Counted from the stretch's first letter, positions 1-53,425 are shown. The stretch: DNA of 64,000 bases from Blastocladiella emersonii ATCC 22665 (GCA_025594325.1 JANHCV010000005.1:1860001-1924000), one strand, 5' to 3'. Notes: generated by a model from the sequence alone, not told the origin. Numbers and translations are program-made.

Positions 1-34
1 ATCTGCAGTCACAAGTCCCGAAATCATCTATGAC

Positions 35-1365
35 TTGATGCAACGCAACACCATGGATCGATGGACCTCAAGTCTTGCAATGTTACCTGTTGAGTTGGTC
101 GCGCGGTGCTTGCAGTTTGCCCAGCCGCGCTCGGACCTTCCCGCGACCTGTACCGTGCTTTGTGACGCGACACGCGAGCAACATGTTTCCGCATTGTGGA
201 ACCACCTCGTCGCTCGCTGGTACCTTGCTCTCGCGGCCACGGACAGCGATTACGACCTGTGCAGTCGCATTGGCGTGGCTCCCATTCCGGTTCGAGGTCT
301 GGCCCCGGCTCCGATCCCGACGGCCACTCTTGGGCGCATCGGAGTTCTTCTTATGTGCAGCGTTTCTCCGGAACATCTCGGAGACGCCGTGCTTGAAGAA
401 CAAATTATCGAGCTTTACTCGCCAGACGCATTTCAAGTCCCCTTGCATCACCCGTTGATCACGTTCCTACGCATTCTTGTCCGTGCCATCGTTTTCGGGC
501 GCGCAGATCTGGTGACGCTCATGATTTCCGAGGCCATGCGTCTTCAGCCCCTTCCCTCAACAGCCTGCCTTCCGCTGGCATACCGAAGTAGTGATTTGGA
601 TCAAAATTCGCTTAGAAAATCCCTCTGCGGCTCCAATCAAGTTTTTTCCAGTTTCTTGCCCTTGTCGCGTGTGCAAGCTTCCACACCGAGACTTTGGACT
701 TGATTCTCGGCAATGACGCGCTGCAGACGAGTCGAGCGGATGTTGCGGGCGTATTCTGTGACCCAGCAGTTGCCTCCATTATCGGTATTGGTTATCTGCT
801 CCTAGATACGCGGATGAGCGGTGCCAAAGAGCACGCACAAGCCATTTTTTCGCTTGTCCTCACTGACGTGTCAGATTGGCCGGCGTCGTTTGTTGCCAGA
901 ATTGTTGTCATTGCGTTATCCCTGCCCCAGAAAGCATTCGTGTCCATCTTGCAAGGCCTGTCGGATCGGACAAAGTCTGCTCTGATTCTCAATCCGCCAA
1001 TGAGTGACAAGTCATGCGGCAAGCTCATTCGCAAGAGAATTTCGGCGCTGCTTCCAGATCTCGTTCGGGAAAACTCGGTCGACTTGGTCGAATCCTGTGG
1101 CCTGATGGACGAGCGGATGCGACAGGGCGCTCGATCTGCCGCAACGATGGGCGTTTTGCCCGGATGATGGCAAGGTTCCGCAAAAGGTTCCACAGGGCGC
1201 TCGATCTGCCGCAACGATGGGCGTTTTGCCCGTATGATGGCAAGGTTCCGCAAAAGGTTCCACAAAGCGTATTTGAAAACTAAGTACCAGCAAGTCTTGT
1301 TTCTGGTGGCCATCTCGTTTTTAGTGTGGCTGCGATTCCTGCCGCTCCCTTCGAGGGGTCGTTAG
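35..1365 (+). pseudogene. F-box-like helical protein, family A copy 1 (frameshifted)
   Basis: N-terminus LAMLPVELVARCLQF; homologous to intact A2 across three frames (35-703, 694-1167, then a tail QQVLFLVAISFLVW ending TAG 1363-1365); lesions near 640 and in the 70-bp duplication. Confidence 0.75.
1122..1264. repeat. 70-bp tandem duplication (2 copies, 1 mismatch)
   Basis: ACAGGGCGCTCGATCTGCCGCAACG... starts at 1122 and again at 1192. Confidence 0.95.
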
Positions 1366-1466
1366 TCGAGCTACATTTCATTTTCATCGGCATTGGATCA
1401 ATCTCAAAGTCTCGGTGTGAGGCAATAGCGATCATCTTTCAGCTCTGAAACTATCCCCCGCAACTG

Positions 1467-1487
1467 ACGCGTCGATCAAATCACGTG
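1467..1487 (+). promoter_or_regulatory. ACGCGT-N9-CACGTG composite motif upstream of A2
   Basis: ACGCGTCGATCAAATCACGTG, ~120 bp before ATG 1606. Confidence 0.55.
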
Positions 1488-1605
1488 GTCAGGTGACCAG
1501 CTTGCGTTGGCTGCGTCGCACGGCGTCGCGTCGCACGTCCTTCTCCCTTCAACCTCCCACCCACGAGGACGTATCTCTGCTAACGACTTGACGCAACGTA
1601 TTACC

Positions 1606-2898
1606 ATGGATCAATGGACCTCTGGCCTTGCGATTTTACCTGTCGAGCTCGTCGCGCGCGTCTTGCAGTTTGTTGAGCCACGCTCGGCCCTTCCCGCGGC
1701 CTCCTCCATTCTTCGTGCAGCTGCAGGCGATCGTCTTGCTTTCACATCGTGGAATCACATTGTCGCTACTTGGTACCTGGCCGCTGCGGACAATCACGAC
1801 CTTTGCGACCGCGTGGGAACGCCTCCGATTCCAACCCCAAATCAACCTCCGTCTCTGCCCACGATTCCAGATGCAATTCTCGAACGGATCGGGGTTATTT
1901 TGCTGCATCGCCCTTTGGCAGAGAAGCTTGACGAGACCATCCCGGCAAACCGCATCTCTAGTGATCACGTCGCGGACGTGAACCGGCGCTCGCCCGAGTG
2001 TGCGACGGTCACATTCCTCCGCATTCTTGTCCGCGTTGTCGCCTTTGGGAGCTTCAACCTCCTGACGCACTTGATTCGCGATACCATGCGAATTTGGCCG
2101 CAGTTGTTTACGACCCGCCTCCCGCTCAAAACATGGAGTCGACTTGCTGATACTGTGCCGGTTCAGTGGATCAAGGTCAAGGGCCGGTCCAAGTTCGGCC
2201 CAATCAAGCTTACCCAGTTTCTTGCGTACGTTGCTTGCGCCTGCTTCCGCGTCGAGGTGTTGGGCTTCTTTCTCGGCAGCAAGGCATACCAAGCGAGCGA
2301 GTTGGAGACTGCCGCCGTCTTCCGCGACCCCAAGGCTGCCAAGGCGGTTGCAGTAGGCTATCGTATGTTGCATCGAGTTGACGCCGACGTAGTGGAACGC
2401 GCCACGGTCATTTTTCCTCTCGTCCTTACCGACGCATCCGAGTGGCCTGCCCCTCTGGCCGCCCTATACCTAGGCCATGTGTTGTGGATAGGACCCGACG
2501 AGGTCCTGTCGGTTCTTCGCGGTCTTGCGCAGCGAACCAAAGCTACGCTCGCTCGTCACTCGCCGCTCAATGACAAAAGGAACGGCCAGCTCATTCGCGA
2601 GTGTGTGTCCCACCTGCTAATTGTGTCCATTACAGAAAACCTGCCCGACTTGCTCGAGTCGTGCGGCCTCATGGACGCGCCGTTGCGGCAACAGGCGAAC
2701 ATAGGCGCCAGTACGCGTTCTCTCCGGTTTGTGAAAATGATCTACCGCTGGGTTTACTATGCGTATCGCCGATTCAATCAGCTTTCGGATCTTCGCCAGA
2801 ACGTTACTTTGGTCGCGTTGGTGATCTTTGTGGTGGTCTTAGTGATGATTTGCCCCTGGGCTTGGCGGGTTTCCCTTTGTATTTTCGGACTGGTGTGA
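1606..2898 (+). CDS. F-box-like helical protein with C-terminal hydrophobic tail, family A copy 2 (intact, 430 aa)
   Basis: Uninterrupted ORF; LAILPVELVARVLQFV F-box-like start; tail VTLVALVIFVVVLVMICPWAW. Confidence 0.8.
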   Translation: MDQWTSGLAILPVELVARVLQFVEPRSALPAASSILRAAAGDRLAFTSWNHIVATWYLAAADNHDLCDRVGTPPIPTPNQPPSLPTIPDAILERIGVILLHRPLAEKLDETIPANRISSDHVADVNRRSPECATVTFLRILVRVVAFGSFNLLTHLIRDTMRIWPQLFTTRLPLKTWSRLADTVPVQWIKVKGRSKFGPIKLTQFLAYVACACFRVEVLGFFLGSKAYQASELETAAVFRDPKAAKAVAVGYRMLHRVDADVVERATVIFPLVLTDASEWPAPLAALYLGHVLWIGPDEVLSVLRGLAQRTKATLARHSPLNDKRNGQLIRECVSHLLIVSITENLPDLLESCGLMDAPLRQQANIGASTRSLRFVKMIYRWVYYAYRRFNQLSDLRQNVTLVALVIFVVVLVMICPWAWRVSLCIFGLV

Positions 2899-3006
2899 TT
2901 ACTGCTGAAACGTTGAGACTCTGATGCGTTTTCCCTTCGCACTACTCATCCTCGTACCGCACTTCTGGCCTGCCCAAAACGCGTCGACGCGATGGCCCAC
3001 CACTCG

Positions 3007-3026
3007 ACGCGTCGATCTATCACGTG
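3007..3026 (+). promoter_or_regulatory. ACGCGT-N8-CACGTG composite motif upstream of A3
   Basis: ACGCGTCGATCTATCACGTG, ~110 bp before ATG 3137. Confidence 0.55.
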
Positions 3027-3136
3027 GTGGCGTGTCCAACGTGCGTCGGTGGCGCTCGCGCTGCGACCACGGCGGTTCGCGAGCGATCGCCCCACCAAGC
3101 TCTCGACGAGGAGCAGTTAACGTCGTCAACGACTCC

Positions 3137-4507
3137 ATGCAACGCAGCACCATGAATCGCCGGACCTCCGGTCTTGCAACTTTACCCAATGAGCTCGTCT
3201 CGCGCGTGCTGCAGTTTGTCAAACCACGTCCGGAACTCCTCACATTCTCCTCGGTGCTTCGTGCGGCTGCGCGAGACCAGTGCGCGCTTACTTCGTGGAG
3301 CCATGTTGCTGCTGCCCGGTACCTGGCTCCCGCGGATCCGCAGGGCGGGCATAACCTTTGCGACCGTGTGGTTACGGCCCCCCTTTCAGCTTAAGCTCCA
3401 GTAGCTTTCGCTCAGCCTCATCTTCCAGCTCCTACTTTGAGCGGATCGGCCTGCTTCTGCTACGCCGCATGTCGGCTGCAGGCCTCAACGAGGTCGAGCT
3501 CTCGGGGCTCATCTGGCGCGATTACGTTGCGAAAACCGAACAGCACCCGGGCGCGTGCGATCCTCTCGCGTTTCTCCGCATCCTCGTCCGCGCCGTCGCG
3601 TTGGGAGTCTGGACCTTGTGGCGCGTCTGATCCGCCACGCCGTGCGCCTTCGCCCGCAGCTGTTCCAGGCCCGCCTCCCGCTCATGTTCTGGAGCCAGCT
3701 CGCCGATACCGAGCCGGTTCAGTGGCTCCGACTCGAGGGCCAGTCTATTCCCAAGTACATCACGCTCCCGCAGTTTCTCGCCTACATTGCCTGCGCGTGC
3801 TTCCGCGTCGAGGTCCTGTCGCTCCTGCTTGGTAACGAGGCCTACCAGGCGAACGAGCCGGACATCACCGCCATTTTCCACGGCGCGCTTGCTGCCGCGG
3901 TGGTCGCCAAGAGATACTACGAGCTGTACCGCGTCGACCGAACCGTGCAGGACCGCGCCACGGTCATCTTCCCGCTTGTCCTCACCGACACTTCGGAGTG
4001 GCCGGCGCCGCTCACTGCGTTCTTCTTTTTTTTTATGCGGTGGACTTTGGCCTCGAGGATTTCGTGTCGCTCGTGCGCGGCTTGTCGCCGCAGACCAAGG
4101 CCAATCTCGCACGCAACTCGCCGCACAAGGACCAAAACTACGGTTCCGAAATTCGCCACGGCGTGCTGGTGTTGCTCCCCGAGTTCGGTTCGCAGGACTC
4201 GGTCGGCTCGCTCAAATCGTGTCGGCTCATGGACGCGTGGCCACTGCGGTGGGGCGCGACGTTCGCTGGCAAGTTTGGCGGCCTGACCCGAGCGCTGGCT
4301 TGGTGGTACCGCTGGCGCTATAACAGAATGAAAGCAGCGAGGCTGGCGGCACAGCAGCAAACCGCGCATTTCTTAGAGCGAGAACACAGGCAAAAGCAGG
4401 CACTTTTTGAAGAGGAAGAAGTTCTTATTTTTCTTAGCCCTTGGCAACGCCGCCATCCGGTGCCGCGAGCGGGCGATCCCGCCGCCAGCTCGCGCGCGCG
4501 GGATTAG
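3137..4507 (+). pseudogene. F-box-like helical protein, family A copy 3 (three frameshifts)
   Basis: LATLPNELVSRVLQFV; homology to A2 switches frame near 3375, 3620 and the poly-T at ~4030. Confidence 0.75.
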
Positions 4508-4941: not shown

Positions 4942-4961
4942 GCGCGTCAATCAATCACGTG
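4942..4961 (+). promoter_or_regulatory. GCGCGT-N8-CACGTG composite motif variant
   Basis: GCGCGTCAATCAATCACGTG followed by GGAGACATTTTC; no obvious sense gene downstream. Confidence 0.4.
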
Positions 4962-21571: not shown

Positions 21572-24500
21572 TGTCTCGCACATTGCACGTGTTGGGCGCG
21601 ACGCGTCGTCCGTTGTTCGGCGCCGCGCCGCGTTCGCTCCGTTGCAAACGCGATCCGTCTCGACCCGTATCCCACTTTGCCCAGATTTTTCTCAATGCGG
21701 CAACGGCTCAGAGCAACCTCGTCGACCACCCCGAGCGAGACTCCTGCCGCTCCTCGAGGGATCGTCAAAGAGCGGATCGCGAGTGCGGTGGCCAAGTTTG
21801 GCTGCGTGCCTCGCTCGGCCGGCTTCGCGCTGGATCGCACCGCGGCCGCGCCGCAGGGTTGTTCGTTCTCCTCGACTTCAGTTCTCGGCCTTCAGCGAAC
21901 TTGAGCAGCATGGATCGAGCAAAATACATGATGCACTTGCGCCATGGCTACTGCTTCGATGGAGTTCGAGTCGCGCGAGTAAGGTTGTTCGAGAACCTGT
22001 CCCAACTCGTTGTCGAAGTTGCGGGTGAAGGAGAGCGTCAATCATCGTAGCTCAAGGCCATCGAACGCGGACACACCGCACGGCGCTTGCTGTCATGCCA
22101 GCCACATTGGTGGCTCGGGACTCTGACAGCGACTGAACAGTGTCGAACGGGTCAACCCATTCACACAGACCGGCCACCGTCACCGGTGCCAGGACCATGG
22201 CCGCCCGTGGCCGGCATGGCCGTGATCGCCCTCCTCGACGCGTCTTCCACCGCGTCTTGATCTCCCACTTGGCCACCGCGCTCGCGAGGTCAGGCAGGAC
22301 AATCACGCGTCGTGTCTCGCGCGCGCTGGCAGAAACCTGAGCGCGGGAGGCAGTGTCCGAGCTCGCGCCCGAGCGAGTATCATGGTTTCCCGAGCGCGCG
22401 CCGCCTCCCGCTCGGGCGAGCCTCCTTCTGTGCAACTCGCTCTCCTCCCCTCCGCTTGCCGACCTCGATAACAGAGATAGACCCGTCCAGTAGCCGGATC
22501 AACGCCTTCCACACCCGCTGCACCACCCGCCGTCATCGACAGGAACTCGCGAACTAGTCGCAGCACTCCAGCAACCATGGGCCGCACGAGCACCCTCGTC
22601 CGGTCCGCGATCCGGTCGGGGCTCAAGTCCCTGGCCCGCAACGTGAACGCCGGCCTCGCCGCCCTCGCCGGTCCGCACGGCCAGATGGTCTACACGCAGC
22701 AGTACGTTCTCATTCATGCGCGACGGTCTGATCCGGCGCGAGCGGTCCAGCGAGCGGTGGTGGTTGTGGCGCAGCGCGATCACGCCGCACCGCTCTTCTC
22801 CCGCTGCCAACCCCGATCCGCTCCCTTACCCCATGAATCTCTGCTGAACTCGATGCATCGTCTACCAGGACCGCTACTACTGCCTTCAAGCGCGACTTCG
22901 TCGCCAAGTCGGCCGAACCGATTCCCGCCACCGCCACCTCCGAGGTGACCGTCTCCGCGTCGCCCCCGCCCGCCATCGTCTCGGCCGTGAAGCCCGCCAA
23001 GTCGGTCGTCGCCGTCGACTCGGGCATCCTCGCCGCCTCTTCGGCTGCCTCGATTGAGCAGCTCGCCCACAACAAGACTGTGGGAACCGCCACCTCGACT
23101 GCCACAAAGAATGCGCCCGCATGCGCCGCGCCCGCCATTGCCATCACCAAGGACCTCGTCTCGGCTCTCGAACTGCGCGACTCGGACCACATCATCAAGA
23201 CCGAGAACCAGAACCATGTCAAGGCCGTGAAGTACGTACGAGCAGCAATCGGCCGCCACCCGGCGTATGCCTGACCACTGTCCGCCGTGTGTAGCATCCC
23301 CGAGAACTCGGAGCGCGCCTCCGGCAAGACTGACGACTCGCAGGACGAGTCGGTCGTCAAGTCGTCGCCCGCCATCATCATCGACGCGACCCGCCTCCCC
23401 AACGCCAACGAGATCACCTTCGCCAACTTCAGGACCGACGCCTTCACCACCAGCAGCGAGGCTACGGCACTCCTGCGCGTGGCAGCCGAGGTCAACGCGT
23501 CCGCATCGGTGGCTACCGTGGCTATCAAGGAGGAGTACGTCACGCACACCGGTCCGACTTTGGCGAGGCTATACCGACCCCCATTCCCGTGTAGGTTCAA
23601 GTCGTCCGGCATCATCGGCACCGACGCAACCGACAAGCTGGCCGTTCCGCACCAGCGGCAGTCTGAGTTTGCGCAGACCGAGGGCCGCGTCGAGTCGGCA
23701 CCCGTTCTCGCCCCCTCTACCGGTATCTCCGTCGATGCCGAGTACACCAAGCTTCTCTCCATGAGCCTTCGCGCTGCGGCGCTGTTCCACAAGCTGGCTG
23801 CGAGCGACGACTCCATCATCGAGGTCGGGTCGCCCGCCGTGGTCATCATGGACAAGTACGTGCTTCTCTCGCCTGGACAGCCGTCGTGGAGCTCGCTAAC
23901 ACGGTTCGCCGCTGACAGGGTCATGTCCGACGCGACCAACTCCACGAACGAGTGCAAGGCCTCGGTCCTCACCCCGCAGCAGGATCAGCAGGTCAAGGAG
24001 CAGGTCCTCGTCCGCGACGACGCGTCGACGCCCGGTCCCGTCGCCGTCGCCGGCGCCAGCAACCTCATCGAGGAGATCAACCACCCGTAAGTGACTATGT
24101 TCAGTGCCGTGGATCCGCGAACCTCGCTGACTCCATCGCTTGTCCAGTGTTGAGCCGGCCTCGGCCTCCGCCGAGGGCGAGACCGAGCCCGTCGTTCTCA
24201 CGTCCCAGCAGCATACCGGATCCGAGCAGCTCAAGCCGACGCTCGACTCTGGCTCCGTCGAGTCTGCGCCCGCCATCGCCGTCGCGATCGGCGTCGTCGA
24301 CACCCACGACACCTCGCTGGCCAAGCAGGGCCAGTCCGCTGTTCCCGTCAGCGAGACGACCAGGACCAACGCCAAGATTGAGGGACCCGGCGTGACTGCC
24401 GAGGCCAAGTACGTTGCCCTTTTGCTCAACCGATATGACGGATCAGTGGCTAACACCCGGCTAACCCTCTAGAGTGGACTCAATGGAGATCGCCAACGCA

Positions 24501-26500
24501 GGCCGAGGAGTCGCAGGTTGCGGTCGGTACTATGGCGCCGCCCTCGCTCCAGGAGCGCCAGCCCGCGCCCGAGACCAGCACGCCGTCGTGCGCCGATGGC
24601 GACGCGAACCTGCAGCAGGCCCCGATCACTGCTCACGACGCGGCGTCGCAGCGGAAGTCGGTCTCGTCGGCGGCAGCGGCCAGCGTCACTGCTGCTGCAA
24701 GCCCGAGTGAGGCGCCTCCCGCGTCCGGTTCGGCCGCTGCACCGGGGTACGCTCATCACTACGCGTCGGGGTGCCCACGACTGAATACTAACTCACTACC
24801 TTTCGCATATTTGTAGAACCGAGGCCGCACCGGCGGCGCCCAGTCAGGTCAAGCGCAGCGGCGGCGGGTACCCGCCGATGAAGCTGATCCCGATCCAGCC
24901 GTACGTCGAGCCGGTCGTGCTCAAGCCGAGTCCGGGCTTCATGCCCCGGAAGCCCGGCCGGAAGGTGTCCGACATATACAACCCGCGCGTGCACGGGTAC
25001 GTCGCACCTTGGCTTTGCTCCCCTCGCGCAATCCTGAGCGCTGACGTCCTTGCCCGGCGCCGTGTAGGATCGGCATGTTCCGCAAGCCCTACGTGCCGTC
25101 GACGATCGAGTCCAAGCGCTACTACCCCAAGTTCGACTACACGCAGGGGCCGCAGTGGATCGCCTCGCTCGGCGATCGGTACTACGCGTGGCGCTACCCG
25201 AACCGCATGCCGCCGGCCGATCCCGACGTGTCTTCATCCGCGGCCTCGATGAGGACTAGTGGTGGCAGTGCGCCCGAGGCGTCGCCAGTCGCTGATCATG
25301 CACCGCTCGTCGAGGCTGCCCCCGCACCAGGGCCAGCGCCGGCTCGGGCCTCGGCCGCATGGACGCCGCGCGTTCCGTCGCTGATCGTTAAGATGCTCGA
25401 GGGCGCCGAGTCGGTTCCCCACGCGTTTTTCGGGCTGGTGATGCACGGCGACGACACGGCCGACTGGACGGACGAGGGCCGGCACGGGCCCACGAGCGCC
25501 GAGGTGGCCCGCGACTTCCAGCACGGCGCGCTCGGCGTCACGCGCGCCTTCATCGACGGCGAGTCGGACCCGTACCTCAAGCTGGTGGAGGACATCGAGA
25601 CGGTTGTGCCGCACTCGCTGTTCGACGCGCTCGGCGTGCACCTCATGACGCGGCCCGCGCCGCTGCTCCCCAAGGCCTCGGTTCTCGCCCTGCTGCACGT
25701 CGTCGACCAGCACCCGGCGGCCATGGCGCACTATACACGCGCCATGGACCCGTCGCTCACGCGTGTCCGGCCGTTCTGCGACATGGCGCCGTTCGACAAG
25801 TACTCGTGGCGGGCGTTTGAGCGTCTCGACCGCGCCGTGCTGCGCGCCTGTGCCGCGGGCCAGGGCGTGTTCGACTCGCACGAGCAGGCCACCGACGCGA
25901 TGGCGTGCCTGTGGTATGTCGGCCGGCTCGTTAACAAGGCGCTCCCGAACTGGCCGGCGGACCACGGCGACGCGCAGCGGGTGGCCATGGTGGTCGCGCA
26001 GCACCTCATGTGGGTCGACCCGAACGGCATGATCGCGGCGTGGTCCGACCCGGCGTCGTACGAGCGCGCGGCCATGTGCCTGGCCAACTACCTGGTAGCC
26101 ATGGTCCCGCGGCGCCCCTTGGGCCGGCCCAAGGACGGGGCCAAATAGGAGTGAAACGCTATCCCAGGAGAGATGTGTTGTATCATAGAGATAGAAACGG
26201 TGTGTATAGGTCCTTGTCCTGTCCTCGTGCAAGTGAGATTTCCGGGCTGTAGAAGGAGCGGGGACGAAGTTCGAGGCGCGTCGCTCATCTCCGGTTAGCG
26301 CGCGAGCAGACTCACGCGCTCGTCGCCGGCGCTCCCTCTCTCTCTCTGATTCGAGCACCACACCCCAAAAGCACCATGGACTTGATGCAATCTCATGAAA
26401 ACAGCCCGGGCAGCGTTCAGCTCGCTCGGCTCCCCGCGGAATTGCAGACCGCCGTCCTCCAGCTGGCCGACCCGCGCTCCTCGATCGCGGCCGCTTCTGC
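21572..26500. repeat. Left arm of 4929-bp near-perfect inverted repeat
   Basis: Reverse complement of 53301-58229; paired coordinates sum to 79801; only two differences seen (22663, 24968), though not every base was compared. Confidence 0.97.
22577..26148 (+). CDS. Multi-exon protein: long Ala/Ser/Thr/Pro-rich region plus C-terminal RhoGAP-like helical domain (copy 1)
   Basis: Several GTACG/GTAAG...CTAAC/CTGAC...AG introns join ORF pieces 22577, 22945, 23287, 24140, 24532, 24878, 25075; one junction (~24410-24470) unresolved. Confidence 0.65.
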
Positions 26501-28654
26501 CTCTCTTTGTGCGCTTTCCCGAGAGAGCTACACGCGGCACTCGTGGATTCTTGCTATCGTGGACCGGCTCCTTGCGCTCCCCGTTAGGCCAAACCGCTAT
26601 GGACGGCGCGTGCCCAACGACGCCCTGTCGCGTCTTGTCCTTTGTGACCTCAATCCAGCCCTGACTCAGAATCCTAAGATTGTGCTTCAGTGGAACTACA
26701 AGCGCGTTCCGCCGCCGATGGAAGTCTTTGTCGCTCTAGCCTCGCACATGTGTCGCCGGGTTCAGCTCTGCGACCTAGAGCCCTTGAATTTTCACCAACG
26801 TCTGGAGCTATCACTCACCGAGCAGAATAGCTCTGTTTGGGTGAGTCCTGTTGCCGCGCTCGTCCGGCTTCTCGCAGCTGGAGTGGCGTTTGAATGGACG
26901 GATTTCCTGAGCCAAGCTCTCGGCCTTGTCGCATCGCGCTGCCCCCAGCTCCTTGACGTGCGCCTGGAACTCTCGGAGTGGGTGCTGCTTCTTCAAGTTC
27001 CTGACTACGCTTTTGAAATTTACGAAGTCGAGGCGATCACTACATTTTCGCTCCGGTTTGTGGATGCTCTCGTTTTCCTCTCAGTCGCAATTTGGAATTC
27101 CGCAAGCTTTCGTGCGTTACTCGGCGAACCTCGGCACGCCGTGGACGCGGCGGCTCTTGCTGCTGTACTTTGTGCGGACGGCCCGTCAGGATTCGTTCTT
27201 GAAGAAACGGGGAAGCACGAGTTTGTTCGTCATGCGGCGGACATCCTCCCCTGGATTCTCGAGTACAGCCCGCAAATGTCAGCCGAAGTGCGCAACGCGT
27301 ACGTTCAGACGGCGGTCTCCCTGGGGGGCGACGTTTTCACGCCGTTGCTCGCCCAGTTTCCTGACCAGGTCGTGGCTTCTCTCCCCTTCCGAGACGATAT
27401 CGGAGACGCGCTCCTCGATGTCATGGGGCTTCCCGACCCGCAGCCCGAAGACGGACAGACTGCCCGCCAGCTTGGCGATAGGATCGTGACTTGGTTTGAC
27501 GAAGGTCTGTCAGTTGAAAATCTCGAAACCCTTGACTCTCACGGATTAATCGCTTCCAAATGGTGGAGCTACTTGGTCGGCACAGCGATCGCCCGCGAGA
27601 AGTTTGATTACATTTCTCGTCTTCGCAAGCGATACACCCTTGACGAGTGGAGGACGCTGATCCTCAATGGTATGGCCTGGAACCTGCTCGCAGACCACCG
27701 CGAGCGAGTTGCTCACGCCGCCGTGTGCGTTGTGTAGCATACTGCGTCGCGCGCCGCGAATATCGAACAGATGGCGATATCATTGCTCGCGCCATCCTCA
27801 CGCACGCACTATTTACTGGTCCTCAAGATAACGGAAGCGACCTTGACCGTCTCACCTTGGGCGATTTCGCCAACGCCTTCCGTCTCCACTCTGGCCAATC
27901 GACCAACACTTGGCAGTCCGACTTTCTCGTCTGTGGCGACGTGTTCATCATTGATGAAAACCTTCTCGCTCGTCCCGAGATTATGGCTGAACTGGTCTGT
28001 CTTCTCGCAAGTGCTGTTTCGACGCCTGAAGGCAGGAGCGAGCTTACGCGCCAAGTCAAGCGTTTGGGTTTGGGCTATGTTCATCTCCTTTTATTCAGAG
28101 TGATCCGGCACGTACTCAACCTTGAAGGTGTTCCGGAGGTGCCCCCTCGCTTTGATTACTTTTCCGACGCAGGGCACTCGATTTGCCGCGAGTGCCCGCT
28201 CGCGGCGCAACAGGTTTGGCGTGAACTTGTCCTTGCACTCTGGGATAAGTGCCAGGCACCCTGGTACCCCGAGTATCTCACCCCGCCGTACCTCGATAGC
28301 TTTTCGCGTCTGTGCAAGTACTTTAAAGTCGATGGGAGCGAGCCTGTCAACAAACAATGTGCTTGCAACGGACTCGCGTCTGCTCGGCTCGTCACGCGGA
28401 TCTTTTTCGCGAGTGGCTTCGACGAAACATTTTGTGGCCTGCAGGACGAGGTAAATCTCGGTACCGTGTCTCCGGTTGTTCTCCGGATCGTCCCGGACGC
28501 TGCACTGGACGAAGCCAAAAACTCCAGTGCGGTCGAAGAACTCATTGTCAAGCTCTTCAGGAACGCCGGGATGGAGGTGCTTCCGCGCTGGGGTCTCGAG
28601 GAGCTAGCCCGAATCGCCCCTGATGTGTTTGAGTACTGTGGGTTTGCCCTGTGA
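26376..28654 (+). CDS. F-box-like helical protein with C-terminal Cys motif, family C copy 1 (2 exons, apparently intact)
   Basis: LARLPAELQTAVLQL; phase-1 intron GTATGG...TGTGTAG after LILN joins to AYCVARRE; ICRECP...CAC. Confidence 0.8.
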
Positions 28655-30149: not shown

Positions 30150-31366
30150 CTAGAACCCCTTCACGTACGCCTTCACAAAGGAAGGCTCAAGCACAGTGCA
30201 CGGAGCAAGACGGCTCAGACCCTCGACGGTGCCGACAGGCAATTTGTTGACTGACCCATGCCCATCACGGGCGACAAGAGCCGCGAGCTGGACCAGCTCG
30301 TCCGCGCTGACGACCCCGTCAAGAAAGCCGGAGAGAAGTCGTTTCCAGGCCGCTGGAGCCGCGCGCCCGCCAGAATGCGCCATGAGGGCATCAAAGAACG
30401 AACGCGGGACGGCCGTCGTGATCGCGCGCGCAACATGACGCAAGGTGATCACGCAGTCGCAGGCGCAAGAGTCATTCTCCGCATGCCGATATTTGGAAAA
30501 CTCCGCGAGATGAGCCCATACCAGTTGGGCAAGCTTGGTCGCAACCTGGTCGTCAACCGACATTAGAAAAGCGTCGAAGAGGATGGTAAGCGTATCGCGC
30601 CAGGGCTGCTGCCACGCGAGCGGGCAGTCCGTGCAAGGGTTGATACCAGGAAGTGCACCAGTGGCCTGATTGTGGTTCTTGTGCAAGTGGTCCTCATCCG
30701 AAGCAAGGGACGAAATCATGGCGTCGCAAAACTGGAGTTCGCAACCTGCATCACGGATCACGGTGAGTGCCGTGTCGCGGGTCTGCGAATCCAAGACGCT
30801 TTGAGGAGTTTGCGAGTGCGGTGCGAGAAGCTGCTGGAGCAGGTGCACGTGGCCAGTCACAGACGCCGCAAAGAGCGTGTGAAGGAACGTTGGGAGAGCA
30901 TGATGCCGCGGATGAGCCTTTGGCTTGGCCGAGTAGCGCTGGATTTGGCGCTTCAAGGACTCCGCGTCGAGCCTGCAGAGCTGGATTCGGTGCGAAAGGC
31001 AAGACGAAAGAGAGGCCAAGGCGAGAACCGGTTCTCCCACGCAAGGCTTGCGGAAGCATCGAAAGCTTGATCGAAGTCGAGACGGCCCATCAAGAACTGG
31101 ACTCTTAACCCTTTTTTCTCGGTGATCCAAAAGTACCGATTGTGGACGGCTGGAGTCCGTAGCTGCGTGAAGAGTGGCTCGGCAACGCGGTCTATCCAAT
31201 GATGAGCAACTCGCGCGTCTCGAATAGCGGGTGCGAAACACGCGGAGGCCGCGGCGAGGGCGGAGCGCAGACCAGCGAGCGGCAGGACCCGGTCGAGGGC
31301 GTCAGACGGCAAGTGTGCAAGTGTGAGGTGCAGGTAGCCAGCTTTGTATTGCATGAGGTGCTCCAT
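30150..31366 (-). pseudogene. F-box-like helical protein, family D copy 1 (frameshift and internal deletion)
   Basis: LAHLPSDALDRVLPL; frameshift near 31030; lacks ~1.1 kb present in D2; keeps PCTDCPLAWQQPWR...CACD. Confidence 0.7.
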
Positions 31367-31605: not shown

Positions 31606-33924
31606 CTACGGCTCATGCAAGGCGAGAGCGCTCCCAAGTCGGCTCTCGAGGTACTTTGTGAAGGAGGGCTGGAACACAGCTTCCGGAGCAAGGCGTGACA
31701 GACCCGAGATCATATCCGGAGGGACCGCTCCAGTCGACTCGAGCGTGCCAAGCGAAGCGCGGACCGCGAGCCACGCCAACTCGTGCGGATGGGCGACCCC
31801 GTCAAATATTTGGGCCGGGAGCAGCTTCCAGGCCGGAATAGCCGCAATACCGCACGGATGAGTCAAGAGAGACTCGAAAAACGCGCGGGGCTCTGCCGCT
31901 GCGACCACACCTGCAACGTGTTGCGCAGTTGTGAGAGGGTCACACGCACACGTTTCATTAGACTCGGGGTCCGCATCCACTTCGGACTCATTGGCAGCTC
32001 GAACAAGGTAAGTCCACGCCGCAAGCACGAGCCATTTGCCAACCTTGCTTGTTGGGGGCACTGGAAAGCCATCAAGCAGTGCAGAAAACGTGGCACGCCA
32101 GGCCTGCTGCCAGGTAAGCGGGCATGCGAGACAAATTTCGAGGTCAAATAGCGCACCCGTGGCATTATGGTGGTCGTCACCGCGCAGGCAATCACCCTCG
32201 CTGGGCGCATACGACCAAATCACAGCATCACGAAACTTGGGACCGCAGTCTCCGATTCGCATCATCTCGAGCGCTGCATCGCGCGAGCCCTGGTTCGATA
32301 GAGCGGCGACCGAAAGACGCGTGATATTGATCGACGTAGTGTCGACATATTGATCGTTGTGGGTTGCAAAGCGTTCGATGACCATGACCAAAAGTTCGAG
32401 TGGGCGAACCACCATGTCGCCACTCAGTAGGCCCGAGTAAAGATCGGGCATGTCCCATCCAACGCGCTTCGACCACTGATCGGGGCGCGTGAAGAGATCG
32501 CACAAGGTCCGAATGTCCGCGCAGCCGGTTTCCAGCAAGTGGAGCATGACGTGCTGAGCAGTTTCGCGCCGCTGGAGGCTGTACTTGAACGCTACGTTCT
32601 CGCGCGGGGGTGGTTAGCATGATTATGATGCAGTCGTCCGTTGCCAAATCGAGTAATCCGTACTCTCTAACAGGAGCGCGTCCCACTGCTCGCCCGTGAG
32701 CCCCCGTTGAAGGCTCGATACAACGTCGTCATTACCACGCGCGAGAGCAGTTGAGAGCATTTCCAAGCGATTCTCATCGCTAACCAGTCCGTGCGAGCTT
32801 AGGAGCTGAAAGTCGGCGGTCGAAATCTCGTCAGCCTCGATCCAGTCTTTGAGATAGCGTTCAAGACTCGAGAGATGTCTGCTATCGAGAGGACTGGAAG
32901 CCAAGAGAAGCTCACTGCAACTCGCAAGCAGCGGGATGAAGAACGCGGCTCCGAACATGGCCACGGTTTCAACAATCGAGTTTGGCACCAGGGACTCGCG
33001 CCATCCGTGCGCATGAAGCCACATGACAGTCGGAATAAACTGGGCCAGATCAACTTCGCTTGACTTTGCCAAACTTTCGACGCACGAGAGGAGCGAGCAA
33101 CCGAGTAATTTGCCGTCCACGAGTCGCACGATCGCGTCCGGCGCCATCCCGTAGCGACGGTCATGGTTGAGGATCTCGAGTACGTGGTGCTGCAAGGCAG
33201 CAGCGGCAAAGAAGCCAAGGGCATCGGGAAGGCGAACTGGAAGCGGGGAGAAGTTCTTACTCGGGCGCTCAAAGTAGGCTTGCAACGTCGACCCATGTAC
33301 AGTTGCAATCGAGCACCAATCCAGAAGTTCCATGGTCAGGTCAGCGACTCGGGGTGAGGTGGCAAGGACGAAATCGAATGCTTGCTGAAGGAGCGTCACT
33401 TGTCCAGTCACGGCGGCCCCAAGGAGTGTGTGAAGAACGGTTGGGAGCGGATGAAGTCGCGGGTGGTCGAGAGGCCGGGTGCAGTAGGTCTTTACCTGCT
33501 GCTGAAGTCGCATTGTGTCGAGGCTGTCAAGCTGAATCCGGTACGTGAGACAGCGCGTAAGCGAGGCAAGGAGCGAGGCCCGGTGCTCCCAAAGCTTACA
33601 ATTCGGCATTTCCGCGAGCTTGGCGGGGTCAAGATTGCCGAGCAGGTAGTGAGCAAGCGTCCGCTTCGCGCTGTAAATGATGCTGAGGAAGCACATTGAC
33701 TGATCCGAGTCGCGCAACTGCTGAAGCAGCGGTCCGGCAACACGATGTGCCCATGGAAGGCACACGTGCTCGTCCTGGGCAGTAGCGTGAAGGCAGAGAG
33801 AAGCAGCGCAAAGGGAGGCGCACGGTTCGGCCAGCGAGAGGACCAAGTCGAGAACGTCGGCCGGCAAAGTCGCGAGCATGGGCGCCGGCGGGACTGTTTC
33901 GTAATGCATGAGGTCTTTCTTCAT
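31606..33924 (-). CDS. F-box-like helical protein with C-terminal Cys motif, family D copy 2 (2 exons)
   Basis: LATLPADVLDLVLSL; phase-1 intron GTACGG...CTAAC...GTAG at the same position as in family C; ICLACPLTWQQAWR...CACD. Confidence 0.8.
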
Positions 33925-34276: not shown

Positions 34277-36601
34277 ATGGACTTGATGCAATCTCATGAA
34301 GACAGCTCGGGCAACATCGAGCTTGCTCGGCTCCCCGCGGAAATGGTGACCGCCGTCCTCCAGCTGGCCGACCCGCGCTCCTCTATCGCGGCCGCTTCTG
34401 CCTTCCTTCACGCACATGTCCAGGAAACTTTCACGCGGCACTCGTGGACTCTTGCTATCGTGACTCGGTTGCTCGCGATTCCGGTCCACACTCGCCGCGC
34501 CAGCCGCGGTCTGAGCGATGTCATGTCGTACATTGTGTTTTCTGACATCAACCCACTCTTGGCGAAGCACCCGAATCTCGTCAATCATCCGGAATACAAG
34601 CGCGTGCCGCCACCGCTCGAAGTACTCGTCGGGCTGGCCTCACACCTGTGTCGCCGCGTCCGACGTTGCGACCTCGAGCCCCAAAACTTACGTCAACATT
34701 TGAACGCATGGACCATCGACCAAGACCTGTCCATATGGATGTGCCCTGTCGTTGCGCTTCTGCAGCTAATCGTGGCGGGTGTGGCCTTCGGGTGGACGGA
34801 TGTCCTACGCAAGGTCCTCGAACTCGTTGCTTTTCGCCATCGCCAGCTGCTCGGCGCGTACTTGAAGCTTTCAGAATGGCTCCCCCTCCTCCGAATTTAC
34901 GATTTCGACATCGACATCGAGCAGCTCGAACCAGCCTTTGCCATTCCGCTGCGATTTGTCGATGCCCTCGCTTATTTCACTTTCGTTCTGTGGCAACCTT
35001 CGAGCTTTACTTTGCTGCTTAGCGAGCCTCAATACGGAATCGACACAGCAGTCCTTGCTGCGCTTCTTTCCACTTACGAGCCTGCTGAGCTTGTGCTAGA
35101 AGACTCCGTGGAACAAGCCACTGGACGCGACTGCGCGGATATGTATCTGTGGGTCTTCGAAAACGGCGATCAAATGCCAGCCGACGTACGCGATGCTTAC
35201 GTGCAGACCGCAGTGTGCTGGGGACACAAGTTGTTCATGTCCTTGCTCGCCCGGTTTCCTGAACAAACTGTGGCTGCTCTCACATTTCGAGACGATGTCG
35301 GGGACGCGCTCCTTGATGCTTGGTGGCTTCCCAATCAGGATTTAGACGGAGAGACCTTTCTCCAGCTTGGCGATTTTATCGTGTCCTGGTTCGACTCGGG
35401 TCTCTCAATCGAAGCGCTCAAAATCCTTGACACTCGCGGACTGATTGCTCCCAAGTGGTGGAGCGACTTGATTGGAACGGTGATCGCCTTCGAAGAGTTT
35501 GACTATGTTGCTAGCCTTCGTACGCGGTACACGCTTGAAGAATGGAAGGAGCTGATTCTCAAAGGTCTGAAACAAACCACTTATCCCGAGCCGTCGCCGC
35601 TCGCCGCTCAGTGACCAAAACGGGCGTATTGTGTAGCATACTGCGGCGAGCGTTGCGAATACCTGGTTATGCGCAGGTACGGGAGCAGCGCATCAATGAT
35701 TCTCACGCGAGCGCTGTCTTCCTCTCCCCAAGCTGATGGATGCGACTTGAATCGCCTGAGGTTGGGTGATTTCGCCAACGCGTACCTTGTTGAGTTCGGC
35801 GGGACGGCAAAGACCTGGCAGTCCGACTTTCTTGTTCACGGCAACTGGTTCATCATCGTTAAGAGCTTATTCAATCGCCCCGAGATATTGCGGGACCTTG
35901 AGTGGATCCTTGCAAGCGCCTGTTCCAGCTTCGCAAGCAAGAAGGAGCTCATGGACCGCTTGGAGCTAGCTGAGGTCGAGCACCTGCTGCTGAGCGCCAT
36001 ACTCCGAAATCTGCTTACACATGATGAAGACCCAGACATCCCTCATCCCATCCACTACTTTCCTTGTGGCGTCGCAATATGCCGGAACTGCCCGCTCACG
36101 CACCAGCAGGTCTGGCGCAACCTTGTTCTTGCACTTTGGGAACTGTGCGAGTCGACCTATTCCGAGCAGTACGGCCCCCGGTTCGATGACTCTTGGTCAC
36201 AACGTGACCCTCCGTTCGATGATTTTTGGTCGCGACTGTGCAAGCGCTTTCGCCTCGGCAGTGATCAGCACATCAACGTCAACAACTCTCATCTTGCGTG
36301 TGATTCCATAGCGTCAGCACGTCTCGTTGCGCGAATCTTTTGCAAGAACGACCTACAGGACGCATTCCAAATCCTGGAACAGGAGGTGGCCAGCCAGTCT
36401 GTCCCGCCGGCCGTCCTGCAGATTCTGCCCGACGACGCGCTGGACGATTATGCCAGCTTGAGCTGGGACTTTGACGTGTTCAAAACCTTTCCCAGCGCGC
36501 TCTTCAAGGACGCCGGTGCTGATGGAATCCCAGACTGGGCTCGCCAGGAGCTCAAACGGCTTGCGCCAAGTGCGTGGAAGTATGGTGACTTTCTGTTATG
36601 A
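34277..36601 (+). CDS. F-box-like helical protein, family C copy 2 (2 exons, apparently intact)
   Basis: MDLMQSHE...LARLPAEMVTAVLQL; intron after LILK to TGTGTAG; ICRNCP...LACD. Confidence 0.75.
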
Positions 36602-49299: not shown

Positions 49300-51050
49300 C
49301 TTGACGACGACGTGATCCCGAACCTTTGAGCGAACCTTGTTGTTGTCACGCTCGAGTGAGCCGGGGAGCAATGAACGACCTGAGCGTTTCTCGCGCGCGC
49401 TCAGTGCGAAGGACCGCCCAGCGCGCGGTGGTGAAGAAAGGAATGAGCGCGGTGACGAGCGACATCGACACCCACCTGGCCCCCTCAATCGCCATGAGTT
49501 TTGCTCGAGCTCACTGGGTCTCGACAGCACAGGGGCAAGCGAACCGTGGGGCGAGAGGGGCGGCGAAAGAGACGCGTCGATCAATCATGTGACCGCGTGA
49601 GACATTTTCCCATAGGCCGCCCGCGCGGCTTCTGAGCGAGCGCCGCACCGCCGGCACTGCTCGCTCCCCTGACGCATCACTAGAGCTATTTCGTTGCATG
49701 TAACTTATGGAATTGGCGCGCGCAAGGTGCCGTCGACGCAGACTCCGCGTCCACCAGGCAATCCTGACCCGCGCGCGTCGCCTCGTAGCGCGCGACCCGT
49801 CTCGGCTGTGCCGCTGCTCTCAACCTCTGAATGTTTTCTTGCTGTGCTACGCATCTCTTGCTTTGATTCCGCGCGCGGTGACGTCCGTGAGCAGGTATAT
49901 TTACGTCCGCTGTAAAATCTCAAGCGAGCGGGCCACTTCGCTCCCCGGCTCCACGTCACCCTGTAGCATCGAGCCATGGGCCACGTGTAACGATGACGTT
50001 GAGAGTTCGTTCGGAGTCGGCAATATCGCCAGACCGGAATGATGATCAAGTGGTCTCGCGCTCGTGGATCGACATGTGTCACCTCGTTGGGCCACTGCAT
50101 GCACCGTGTCCTTTGTCATCACGCCCGAGTTGCGGCCAGCACTCCTGCCGGATTGGGCCGTTAACTTGCCAATGTTGCTTCACGCGGCACGCGTGAGCAT
50201 CGCGCATTACGACGAGGTCACTCGGATACTCTCACACGGAGGTCGCCCAGATGCAGCGACCGCAAGGTCTGTGATCTTCCTTGGCACCTCACTCCAACGG
50301 CTTGTCATACTGCGCGGCGGGGTTACGGCTTCACTCCCGCGGACTTCGCAAACACGCACGTTCTCGCCGAGCTTTAGCAGCTGAGGTACGCGTCGTCGCG
50401 GCGGCGGACTAGCTCGCTCGCTGCAAGAAACTGACGACCGGTTCGCTACCTCCAGCCGTCCTCCACGCATTAGTCGAGTCCGGTCCGCGATCTCGCGCAC
50501 GCTTCGGCACGTCCTCGATCGCTGCTGCTGTCGAACCTGTTCGCGACGTGCGCGCGTGCATCGACTGCCCTCCTCAACTCGCCCCGCGGATGCTCGTCTC
50601 GCCCGCCCGCTATGCGCGCATGCCCTGATAACCCGGGCCGGCGAGACACGTGCCGTTGGGTGCAGCTGGAAGGAAGGTCACGCGTCGTTGTCCGACAGGC
50701 CAGCGGCGGACGCGCTCGATCGGGATCGCCGTTGGGCGCGTGCGCGAGGTCGCGGATCGTTCGAAATCGTTGCGTTCTGGCGGCCTCGGAGCGCGATATG
50801 CGTAACAACCCGCGCGCTAAGGATCTCTCGGGGTTATGTTGAAATCTCAGATGCTGATTGCCTTTCTCCAGCAATACCTTAGCCGATGGAGCAAATTGTG
50901 ACAGAGTACGGTCAGAATTCAGAAGTGTCTCACGGCCACGTGCCCGAAACGTGATAGTTTGACGCGTCTCGCCGTTCAGAGCGCGACGCGAAGCACCTTG
51001 GTGGTCACTTGTTAGTTCATGGTGAACGTTACAGAGTGCATGACGAAACT
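49300..51050. repeat. Diverged inner inverted arm (right)
   Basis: Partner of ~39300-41050; carries composite motifs at 49572-49591 (+) and ~50948-50967 (-). Confidence 0.85.
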
Positions 51051-51149
51051 TGCATTTATCATGACATCTGGCACGCTCAGGAACAAAAGTCACAAACTAT
51101 GAGCCGCAAACGAGAAGCACCGCAAGGTCGGCCGTGAACGATCGTGTGC

Positions 51150-53425
51150 TTACAGCGAGCATCCAGAAGCGTTGAACGCCTGCGGAGCGACTCGAGCAAA
51201 CTCTTCCGCGCCCCAGCACGGAAGCTCGGACACCTTAATGACCTTGAACAGTGTGAGGACAAGACGCGTGACGCAGTAGTCGTCATTGATCTTGTCCAGC
51301 GCAGCGTCCGGTAAAGTCCGAAGCACGACAGGGGACAGGGTGTTTTTGTCTACTTCCTTTCGAAGGTCGTGAAATGCTGTTTTCGGGTAACCCGAGAAAA
51401 AGACGCGCGTGACGAGACGGGCTGAAGCGAGGCGGTCGCAGGCACATGATTTGCCAGCACGCTCGTTGTCGTCGACTTCAAAGTACTTGCAGAGTCGCGC
51501 GAAGCTGTCATTGAACGGCGGGACGAGATACTCGGGGTACCAGGACTTGCAAGAGTCCAAGAGAGCATGGACAAGGCCGCGCCATGGCTGCTGCGCTGCG
51601 AGCGGACACTCGCGGCAAATCGTGTGTTTTGCGTTCAAAAAGTAATCGAAGCGACGAGGGACGACTGGGACACTGCTATCGGGGTTGAGTAAATTCTGGA
51701 TGAACGCGTACAGCAGAAGGTGTACGACGCCGTTGCGCTCCAAATGAATTTACAACTTGCTCGTGTCATCGGCCGCCGCGAGGGCAGTCGCGAGAAGCCA
51801 CAGGACCTCGTCCATGATTTTCGGACAATCGAGAAATTTCTCGTCGATGATGAACACGTCACCAAAAACGAGAAATTCGAACTGCCAGGTCTCGGACATC
51901 TCGGCAACCTCACGGCGAAAAGCATCAGCGAAATCGCCCAAGCTGAGAAGGTTGGCTTCGCTGCCGCTGACTCCAGGGCTGGGAAGGAGCACATGCTTGA
52001 GAATCTCGGCGGCCATGTCCTCGTTCTCGCACCGGAAATCACGACGTGCGATGCAGTAGGCTATATAGATCAGGCGGCGGGGGTGAGCGAACGTCTTGGA
52101 CTAGCTCGTAAATGTGAGTTCCCATGCGTGCCTTTGAGGATCAGCGTCTTCCATTCGTCGAGGGTATACCGCTCGCGAAGAAGGGCAACATAGTCAAACT
52201 TCTTGCCGGCGATCGCTGTTCCGACCAGGTAGCCCCACCATTTGGGTGCAATCAGTCCGTGAGCGTCAAGGATTTCAAGATTTTCAACCGAGAGTCCGTT
52301 GTCGAAATAGGCCACGATCCGGTCGCCAAGCTGATTGAAAGTGTCTCGGTCTTCGCCCTGCGGGTCGGGGAACCACCGCACGTCCAGAAGCGCGTCCCCG
52401 ATATCGTCTCGAAACGGAAGAGCAGCCACGACCAGGTCGGGGAACCGGACGAGCAGCGGCATGAAGCACCGCTCTCCCAGCGAGACGGCGGTTTGTACGT
52501 AGGCGCTGCGCACCTCGGCCGACATTTGCGAGCTGTAGTCGAGAATCCAAGGGAAAATGTTTGCGGCACCGCGGTCGGCGCCGTACCTCCCTGTTCCGAG
52601 GAGAGCGAGCTCGGATGGGCCATCCGTGCAAAGTACAGCTGCGAGCGCCGCCTCGTCCACCGAGTACTGAGGCTCGCGGAGAAACGCGTGAAAGACGTCA
52701 GATTCCCACCGTACGACGGCAAGATATGCGAGTGCATCGGCAAACCGGAGCGGGAAAGCAGCAAGGATCTCGAGCTGCTCATCACCAAGATACACTTCGT
52801 GGGCTCGAAGGAGCAATACCCACTCTGCCAAGTCCAGGCGGACGTCGAAGAGCTGAGGACGGCGTGAAGCGACAAGGTCGAGAGCTTGGCACAGGAAATC
52901 GGTCCATCCAGAGGCAACACCCGCGACGAGAAGCCGCACGAGCGTAGCAACAGGGCTTTTCCAGACGGGGCTATTTTGCTCGATGAACGACTGTTCCAGA
53001 TGTTGGCGAAGGATCGAGGGCTCAAAGTTGGTGAGATGACCCCGGCGACACATGTGCGAAGAGAGAGCGACGAACACTTCCATCGGCGGCGGAATTTGCT
53101 TGTAGTCCCACCGATCAAAAGTCGTGCGGTCTTGCGTCAAGGCTGGATTGATATCACAACGGACGAGACGCGACAAGGCATCGCCAGGCGGAGGGCTGCC
53201 GTAGCGGGGTGTGTGGATGGGAAGCGCAACGAGCCGGTCCGCGATCGCGAGCATCCACGAGTGCCGCGTGGAGCACTCTCGGGAAAGTGCACAAAGAGGA
53301 GCAGAAGCGGCCGCGATCGAGGAGCGCGGGTCGGCCAGCTGGAGGACGGCGGTCTGCAATTCCGCGGGGAGCCGAGCGAGCTGAACGCTGCCCGGGCTGT
53401 TTTCATGAGATTGCATCAAGTCCAT
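51150..53425 (-). pseudogene. F-box-like helical protein, family C copy 4 (GC donor, in-frame TAA in exon 2)
   Basis: First 125 bp identical to C1; donor AAAG/GCACGC; exon 2 reads ...SKL*IHLERNGVVHLL in one frame; ICRECP...CACD. Confidence 0.75.

Follow-up and report, generated by a model that had tools for sequence, protein, structure and literature searches.

Nine homologous genes lie in tandem in a 64,000-nucleotide stretch of DNA (hereafter, the window) on contig JANHCV010000005.1 of Blastocladiella emersonii, a water mould-like fungus. We consider it likely, with a probability of about 0.6, that they represent a multigene family known so far from B. emersonii only, in which the N-terminal module of the encoded proteins is a divergent F-box serving SCF. 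By their sequence, the proteins would probably deliver substrates to the ubiquitin machinery. Early-diverging fungi have been little studied. B. emersonii is used in the laboratory as a model of zoospore biology and phototaxis.

A tandem cluster of nine homologous genes

A preliminary description of this DNA had proposed a nine-member cluster comprising three families, A, C and D, and nine homologous genes are indeed found at those positions. Four are intact (A2, C1, C2 and D2), with open reading frames of 430-750 codons and intact splice signals; the other five (A1, A3, C3, C4 and D1) are disrupted by frameshifts, a stop or a deletion. These disruptions had been missed, as had a 300-residue second exon in C and D and the continuation of the array of A-type genes upstream, beyond the window. 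The features are as follows.

53..1326, plus strand: A1, A-type, disrupted; N-terminal 216 codons open until a stop at 701-703
from about 601, plus strand: A1, homology resumes in a different frame
1122-1264, plus strand: A1, tandem duplication of 73 bp
1606..2898, plus strand: A2, intact A-type, single exon, 430 codons; F-box-like N-terminus, helical domain, C-terminal hydrophobic anchor (predicted)
3152..4453, plus strand: A3, A-type, disrupted; stop at 3392-3394, and the reading frame changes three or more times, once at a T-run near 4020-4035
21572..26500: inverted repeat, left arm; inner end at about codon 42 of C1
26376..27669, plus strand: C1 exon 1, 431 codons and 1 base; F-box-like module at residues ~16-60, then the all-helical domain (predicted)
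27670..27737, plus strand: C1 intron, 68 nt, phase 1, GT...TAG
27738..28654, plus strand: C1 exon 2, encoding the C-terminal domain (about 305 residues)
30153..31366, minus strand: D1, D-type, truncated
31606..32591, minus strand: D2 exon 2, encoding a C-terminal domain (about 328 residues) that is homologous to C exon 2
32592..32663, minus strand: D2 intron, phase 1, 72 nt (GT...CTAAC...TAG), position shared with C
32664..33924, minus strand: D2 exon 1, intact, 420 codons plus 1 base
34277..35564, plus strand: C2 exon 1, intact, 429 codons plus 1 base
35565..35636, plus strand: C2 intron, 72 nt, phase 1
35637..36601, plus strand: C2 exon 2, about 321 residues
36945..39214, plus strand: C3, C-type, full-length, with two exon 1 frame changes (near 37035 and 37535)
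38230-38303 and 38304-39214, plus strand: C3 intron and exon 2; splice signals intact, exon 2 open
52060-51150, minus strand: C4 exon 2, with an in-frame stop at 51752-51750
52131-52061, minus strand: C4 intron, GC donor
52132..53425, minus strand: C4 exon 1, open, 431 codons plus 1 base
53301..58229: inverted repeat, right arm; inner end at about codon 42 of C4

The sole member modelled within the window is A3, part of which is covered by the deposited gene model P0003 (204 aa). In D1, exon 1 is reduced to its N-terminal ~180 residues, which include one frame change, and joins an exon 2 domain that has kept its last two thirds; lost are about 240 exon 1 residues, the intron and the beginning of exon 2. 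The C/D part of the cluster is flanked by the arms of a near-perfect 4.9-kb inverted repeat, which contains two mismatches (99.96% identity). The first 41 codons of C4, together with 4.8 kb upstream, are identical to those of C1.

The common start of all nine genes, an LAxLPxE/D-type motif, proved specific. Six-frame translation of the window revealed nine occurrences of the strict form L-[AG]-x-L-P-x-[ED]-hydrophobic-xxx-hydrophobic-L, each 7-16 residues downstream of an ATG at the head of a homologous reading frame, against none in 50 locally shuffled windows and none in the reversed sequence. A tenth, loose match at 36416 falls inside C2 exon 2 and was discarded as an N-terminus.

Homology extends well past this motif. 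C and D align over the entire exon 1 (BLASTP, 3e-17), A2 and C4 over 289 residues (tblastn, 1e-8), and A and D over the first 47 residues (9e-6), which upholds the earlier proposal of a single superfamily. The mid helix and second block said to be common to the families occupy identical alignment columns in A2, C1, C2, C4 and D2. Likewise, the phase-1 intron attributed to C and D was found at one common site in C1, C2, C3, C4 and D2. Its branch site is CT(A/C)AC-like and its acceptor TAG; the donor is GT except in C4, where it is GC. Two deposited models, P0001 and P0007, contain both domains with an intron at the same junction, confirming a two-domain protein.

The N-terminal module and its relation to the F-box

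The ~45-residue N-terminal module is most likely a divergent F-box; its sequence pattern is L-A-x-L-P-x-E-L-xxx-V-L-Q-L-A-x-P-R-S ... A-A-S ... W. An alignment of 27 N-termini (A5) has the consensus L-P-x-(E/D)-hydrophobic-xxx-V-L-Q-L, with L11 and W49 conserved in at least 90% of rows. This agrees with the F-box pattern, in which helix 1 starts with L-P-x-E-(I/L) and the hydrophobic positions of helices 1-3 fall within about 45 residues.

The F-box reading advanced in the preliminary description fared unevenly, gaining from a profile-profile match to grass F-boxes and from the recurrence of one F-box-like Pfam family, and losing from the absence of any Pfam gathering score or structural match to an F-box. 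Comparison with Pfam, which had been suggested as a check against PF00646 and PF12937, placed no member at the gathering score: the best of eight window N-termini scored 13.4 bits against a cut-off of 24.3, and full-length proteins gave no match at E<=10. Among the 27 N-termini, F-box-like PF12937 was the only Pfam family to recur, matching six (best E 0.011, always below threshold); PF00646 and PF15966 matched one each, and other families never more than two.

In a profile search of 1.84 billion representative proteins, the only meaningful match outside the species was P0010, an F-box/PP2 protein of Leersia perrieri (A0A0D9VMI4; Pfam F-box-like E 1e-14), which aligned on its F-box with an E-value of 1e-3 that sums the scores of two F-box copies within one protein. 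With hhalign, the family matched P0010 alone at 76% probability. Alignment A5 matched nine grass PP2-type F-boxes, a single F-box subfamily selected after the search, at 95.2% probability over 45 columns (P 2.6e-8, a value that is not selection-free because these F-boxes were picked after one had proved the best outside match). The real alignment scored 41.7, against 9.4 +/- 2.1 for 60 column shuffles (maximum 15.2) and 9.5 for the reversed control.

As in F-boxes (PF00646/PF12937 and the grass PP2 type), the module occupies about 45 residues at the extreme N-terminus. It shares with the grass PP2-type F-boxes the L-P-x-E-L-L-xx-V-L-x-L start, (S/D)-P-R-(D/S), an Ala-rich helix 2 and a Trp about 37 residues past the Pro. 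It differs in falling below all curated thresholds and in helix 2, which is two residues shorter, requires a two-residue gap in the alignment and has Leu in place of the customary Trp. The domain that follows is also different, being an unrecognised helical domain and not PP2, LRR, WD40, Kelch or FBA. A search of the literature on Blastocladiella and F-box found nothing relevant.

The AF2 model of C1 exon 1 (pLDDT 79, pTM 0.78) places helices at residues 21-30, 35-38, 42-48 and 51-67 (pLDDT 65-81). This predicted arrangement of 21-30, a broken 35-48 and 51-67 is compatible with a three-helix F-box. The isolated N-terminal 75 residues gave a poor model, a helical hairpin (pTM 0.38), for which Foldseek returned no match. 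Foldseek with the exon 1 model found no F-box chain, nor did two PDB profile searches with N-terminal alignments at E<=10. Among structures, those closest to the exon 1 model were giant-virus F-box and ankyrin repeat families in BFVD; about 10 of the best 50 were labelled F-box, an enrichment that may mean little because such families are over-represented in that library. These proteins resemble the present family in having a small N-terminal module followed by a helical repeat body, whereas the matches themselves are weak (best E 3e-3, TM <0.3, none at E 1e-3).

Domains beyond the module

After the module, the model predicts an all-helical domain of ~370 residues whose fold is unrecognised. 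This domain has no significant match in solved-structure or viral structure libraries, nor in Pfam or PDB sequence searches. Foldseek matches in the PDB were all weak and of a generic solenoid kind (E>=0.015, TM<=0.26), and the known helical repeat families (PPR, TPR, ARM/HEAT, ankyrin) gave no Pfam match and no adequate structural match. Alpha-solenoid proteins (PPR, ARM/HEAT, importins) are the top PDB neighbours and share an all-helical body of paired helices; they differ in that TM-scores are 0.13-0.26 at an rmsd of 15-25 Å, no Pfam repeat is matched and the family sequence shows no evident internal repeat. Pfam searches with the full-length products and with both exons separately found no match, as did NCBIfam and a word search of proteins with C1 exon 1.

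The exon 2 domain of C and D (~300 residues) has a CxxC...CxC signature; in C1 it contains the conserved motif CxxCPLxxQQxWR as well as CAC. Pfam and a PDB profile search produced no meaningful match, and the domain has no known relatives; a word search of proteins with a 14-row exon 2 alignment was also without a match, its length window being blind to full-length exon 2 kin. An internal duplication linking the exon 1 and exon 2 domains was rejected (hhalign probability 0.1%).

A-type proteins have instead a hydrophobic stretch near the C-terminus. In the four copies measured, A2 and three A copies upstream of the window, 19-residue Kyte-Doolittle maxima reach 2.2-3.2 at a distance of 21-39 residues from the C-terminus (2.93 in A2, 31 residues before its end), and no such segment occurs in C or D. 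By hydropathy, A-type proteins would thus qualify as tail-anchored: they lack an N-terminal signal and have a single predicted hydrophobic helix in roughly the last 40 residues.

For these proteins we infer Skp1 binding, a ligase function and substrates. The N-terminal module would dock on Skp1, and hence on the Cullin-1 ligase, leaving the variable helical and C-terminal parts to choose the substrate. In C and D, splicing of the conserved phase-1 intron would join the helical domain to the CxxC...CxC domain; in A-type proteins, a single C-terminal transmembrane anchor may instead place substrate selection at the membrane surface.

Distribution, turnover and comparison with known expansions

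The profile search returned 10 matches in all. Eight of them come from genes of GCA_025594325.1 located on contigs 5, 7, 9, 12, 14 and 15, with tandem clusters on at least six contigs. Further unannotated copies adjoin these modelled relatives, and some 30 copies were counted in the loci retrieved. A low-complexity protein, P0004 (E 8e-9), with 15 short stretches and unrelated Pfam matches, was set aside. That relatives were found solely in the same genome agrees with the lineage-specific origin proposed at the outset. The accompanying notion of birth and death also gains support: the tree groups copies by locus, disruptions affect five of the nine, and nine paralogue pairs gave dN/dS values of 0.26-0.50 (dS 0.6-1.7). 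These values are therefore those of real coding genes evolving fast; intact paralogues have been under long-term purifying selection, and the nine pairs gave no sign of gene-wide positive selection. The family would expand by local tandem duplication and shed copies by decay.

The intact copies of the window are absent from the gene calls and protein collections searched, where eight of the nine copies lack a gene model, and exact look-ups of A2 and of a 357-codon open reading frame in the repeat arm found no record. The missing models mean little because the deposited annotation is ab initio, made without transcript evidence. A family of some thirty genes or more that escaped annotation leaves a gap in the B. 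emersonii gene catalogue.

It is possible, if on the unlikely side, that we are dealing with an orphan helical family in which the motif merely resembles an F-box, capping the helical domain or binding another partner, and has no SCF role. The curated-threshold and structure-based F-box tests, which failed or gave no clear answer, would fit such a family, as would the N-terminal helices of the exon 1 model, which pass into the helical domain with no obvious interruption, and a sub-branch (locus L007, three copies) that has lost the Pro and retained the remainder of the module. Against this, the profile-profile match spans all three helices, beyond L-P-x-E, and stands far above composition-matched controls; an F-box-like family is the sole recurrent Pfam family; and a module at the extreme N-terminus before a variable domain is the usual F-box layout.

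Two further readings concern the DNA itself. The copies might be unexpressed, non-functional repeats, the remains of an old expansion or the cargo of a mobile element, which would account for their omission by gene finders. The five broken copies, the absent gene calls, the inverted repeat around the C/D part and the proximity of the relative P0006 to a Plavaka-type transposase gene all lend this some credence. We find it very doubtful nonetheless, given the dN/dS between intact paralogues, the four long open frames with their splice signals and the small weight of models missing from an ab initio annotation. Among the 29 larger window open reading frames outside the family, Pfam found none with a transposase, integrase or reverse-transcriptase domain, and a transposon origin was rejected on this ground. 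It is highly improbable that some copies, or the inverted repeat, are artefacts of assembly, as the near-identity of the arms over 4.9 kb and frame changes at homopolymer runs might suggest: the assembly comes from PacBio HiFi reads polished with Illumina reads, both arms have unique flanks, and collapsed or duplicated reads are impossible because the copies differ by 25-80% in sequence.

We return to the divergent F-box as our preferred reading. Should the module work as an F-box, B. emersonii would have made substrate receptors of its own for ubiquitin ligases, based on domains that have no relative among 1.84 billion proteins. Lineage-specific F-box expansions are already familiar, and no long-standing open question is touched.

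Such expansions occur in plants and nematodes. We regard as improbable, yet worth stating, a fungal counterpart of their surveillance-type expansions: fast-turnover SCF receptors on two folds unseen elsewhere, some membrane-anchored, in which gene conversion through the palindrome arms would maintain the same promoter and F-box in C1 and C4, leaving the substrate-binding part free to diverge in a self/nonself or anti-parasite system. Going by the general traits of the plant and nematode systems, the likeness lies in many divergent tandem paralogues, frequent pseudogenes, restriction to a single lineage and rapid divergence of the part presumed to bind substrate. Conversely, the present family has so far been found in one early-diverging fungal species, with some 30 copies in the loci fetched, evolves without gene-wide positive selection and combines its putative F-box with partner domains that are novel.

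The nine copies and their state

The strict form of the motif with which all nine copies had been described as starting occurs nine times in the window, and it is absent from 50 shuffles and from the reversed sequence; every occurrence stands at the start of a reading frame, and these frames are homologous to one another. The C and D types align over the entire exon 1, comprising the F-box-like N-terminus and an all-helical body (BLASTP 3e-17), and A2 can be aligned to C4 across 289 residues (tblastn 1e-8) and to D2 across its first 47 residues (9e-6). The blocks noted earlier as a 'mid helix' and a 'second block' coincide in their columns across the family alignment, and the phase-1 intron lies at an identical codon position in C1, C2, C3, C4 and D2. 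What the preliminary description saw in the sequence of the nine copies is confirmed.

A short D-L-M-Q-like motif stands 11-16 residues ahead of L-A-x-L-P throughout the family, including the N-termini of the C and D types and of locus L003, found around a profile-search match. It comes after the ATG in the C and D types. In the A type it (window 32-52, 1585-1605 and 3131-3151) precedes the first in-frame ATG, and hence the A-type start codon and 5' structure are only putative; in A2, the stretch from the stop at 1465-1467 to 1606 contains no ATG.

Genes of the C and D types consist of two exons (exon 1 of 420-431 codons, an intron of 68-74 nt and an exon 2 of 304-327 residues), and their spliced models were searched one exon at a time. 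The deposited models of two relatives from other loci of the genome (P0001 and P0007) combine the two domains in a single product, with an intron at the same junction. A-type genes have one exon and a strongly hydrophobic C-terminal segment. Window GC content is 57-68% and introns are short. Four of the nine copies are intact (A2, C1, C2 and D2); the other five are disrupted as follows.

Disrupted copies of the family
A1: frame change, and in the decayed 3' part a 73-bp direct tandem duplication (window 1122-1264, 98.6% identical)
A3: several frame changes, plus a stop at 3392-3394
C3: exon 1 with two frame changes; exon 2 and intron intact
C4: open exon 1; GC donor (52130-52131, minus strand); in-frame exon 2 stop at 51752-51750
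D1: internal deletion, so that the N-terminal ~180 residues run directly into the final two thirds of exon 2

The majority of these disruptions are probably genuine, because the Blastocladiella emersonii ATCC 22665 genome (master JANHCV000000000) was assembled from PacBio HiFi reads with Illumina polishing (PMC9730499). The GC donor and exon 2 stop of C4 suggest a copy heading for decay despite its open exon 1.

Surroundings of the cluster

An inverted repeat of 4,929 bp with two mismatches (arms 21572-26500 and 58229-53301) encloses the C/D part of the cluster together with a proton pump gene. Its inner ends fall inside C1 and C4, at codon ~42 in both. The two copies therefore have exactly the same promoter and F-box-like helix 1 but are only ~75% identical past the boundary. 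This pattern points to recent duplication, or to gene conversion between the palindrome arms ending within the gene. The arms hold ORFs without a known domain at 22710-23972 (minus) and 25075-26148 (plus), and no transposase-type domain was found among the window ORFs scanned.

Neighbouring genes
44914-48590, plus strand: PMA1-type P-type ATPase, a plasma-membrane proton pump
12354-14120, minus strand: member of an unknown paralogue pair, 588 codons
14955-16811, minus strand: its paralogue, 618 codons

Solved fungal and plant structures are about equally similar to the pump (E ~1e-136 and ~1e-132). The paralogue pair shares 47% identity across 548 residues, has no Pfam or PDB match and is presumably the 'family B' of the preliminary description. 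Between it and the A array (5474-10210) lie Impact/RWD-type, FAM210-domain and Tom40-type porin housekeeping genes, whose domain assignments were taken from gene calls on the same stretch of L001, the locus of deposited family protein P0003, a 100% match to window 1-14286. This places the window in GCA_025594325.1, where it begins near base 1,860,001 of the 2.21-Mb contig JANHCV010000005.1.

Relatives and family turnover

Pfam, NCBIfam and word searches gave no identification for the family proteins. A profile HMM built on a five-row exon 1 alignment found only ten matches at E 1e-3 among 1.84e9 representatives. Eight of these come from the B. emersonii assembly itself (contigs 5, 7, 9, 12, 14 and 15); outside the species there were only a low-complexity protein and an F-box/PP2 protein of Leersia perrieri. 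The claim that the family is lineage-specific is upheld in that its relatives among these representatives are confined to B. emersonii. Except for an A3 fragment, window members are absent from the gene calls and protein collection, an absence that carries little weight because the deposited annotation is ab initio.

Six-frame profile scans of the B. emersonii loci revealed more copies, mostly unannotated, adjoining each match there. Directly upstream of the window (L001:975-6089) lie three more A copies, of which one is frameshifted and two are open (451 and 447 codons); this brings the A array to six members or more, with the window beginning part-way through it. The deposited 1425-residue P0001 gene model (L002:10001-15104) is a fusion of two adjacent tandem paralogues, and next to it, at L002:4553-7173 and 8832-9690, are more copies that are unannotated or broken.

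On the maximum-likelihood tree, the copies of each locus cluster together at full support, as expected from local tandem birth, and the A, C and D groups of the window are only weakly joined. Together with the disruption of five of nine copies, this bears out the proposed birth and death. Intact paralogues give dN/dS of 0.26-0.50 at dS 0.6-1.7 (Nei-Gojobori); given these ratios, the genes are fast-evolving under purifying selection, with no gene-wide positive selection. The family is real, unannotated and restricted to the species, with birth-and-death turnover.

Partner domains and the F-box-like N-terminus

In the AF2 model of C1 exon 1, the ~370-residue body after the N-terminal module consists entirely of helices, and no PDB structure resembles it convincingly (TM 0.26 or less). 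Against viral models the best E was 3e-3 with TM below 0.3, and the list held mostly giant-virus ankyrin proteins and F-box-labelled proteins; these matches are weak and may be a library effect. The exon 2 domain is conserved in the wider family (ALAW-PVA, CxxC-L-xxQ-xW, a second Cys pair, GALDG and R-x-AP) and has no relative in Pfam, the PDB or word searches; a kinship with exon 1 was rejected, the two being unrelated. Since the Cys positions vary in distant members, metal binding is only a suggestion from sequence.

The F-box reading of the N-terminus stood in part. An HMM search against Pfam F-box models, proposed as a check, placed no member at threshold; PDB searches with two family profiles found no F-box chain, Foldseek with the exon 1 model (pLDDT 79, pTM 0.78) returned only weak solenoid matches, and the module folded alone gave a poor model and no match. 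Three tandem members at L007:4075-8095 have lost the Pro of L-P-x-E (L-G-A-L-L...) and kept P-R-R...A-A-S...W. On the other side, F-box-like was the sole Pfam family to recur among 27 divergent N-termini (6 of 27), two other Pfam F-box models each matching one. Helices of the exon 1 model at 21-30, 35-48 (broken) and 51-67 are F-box-compatible.

Comparison with plant F-boxes favours homology. The family profile aligns to the Pfam-verified F-boxes of the Leersia protein, its E of 1e-3 being a sum over two F-box copies of that one protein, and hhalign gave 76% probability. Against nine grass F-boxes, a set picked after the search from one F-box subfamily, hhalign gave 95.2% (P 2.6e-8, 45 columns), scoring 41.7 against 9.4 +/- 2.1 (maximum 15.2) for 60 column shuffles and 9.5 for the reversed control. 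We put true F-box homology at roughly three in four, and somewhat favour the module as a working predicted Skp1-binding F-box. The SCF function proposed by the preliminary description, like any part in immunity, nonself recognition or drive, is an inference. The alignment to the grass F-boxes covers all three helices with a two-residue gap in helix 2, and the products of the family are most likely divergent F-box proteins that carry novel partner domains.
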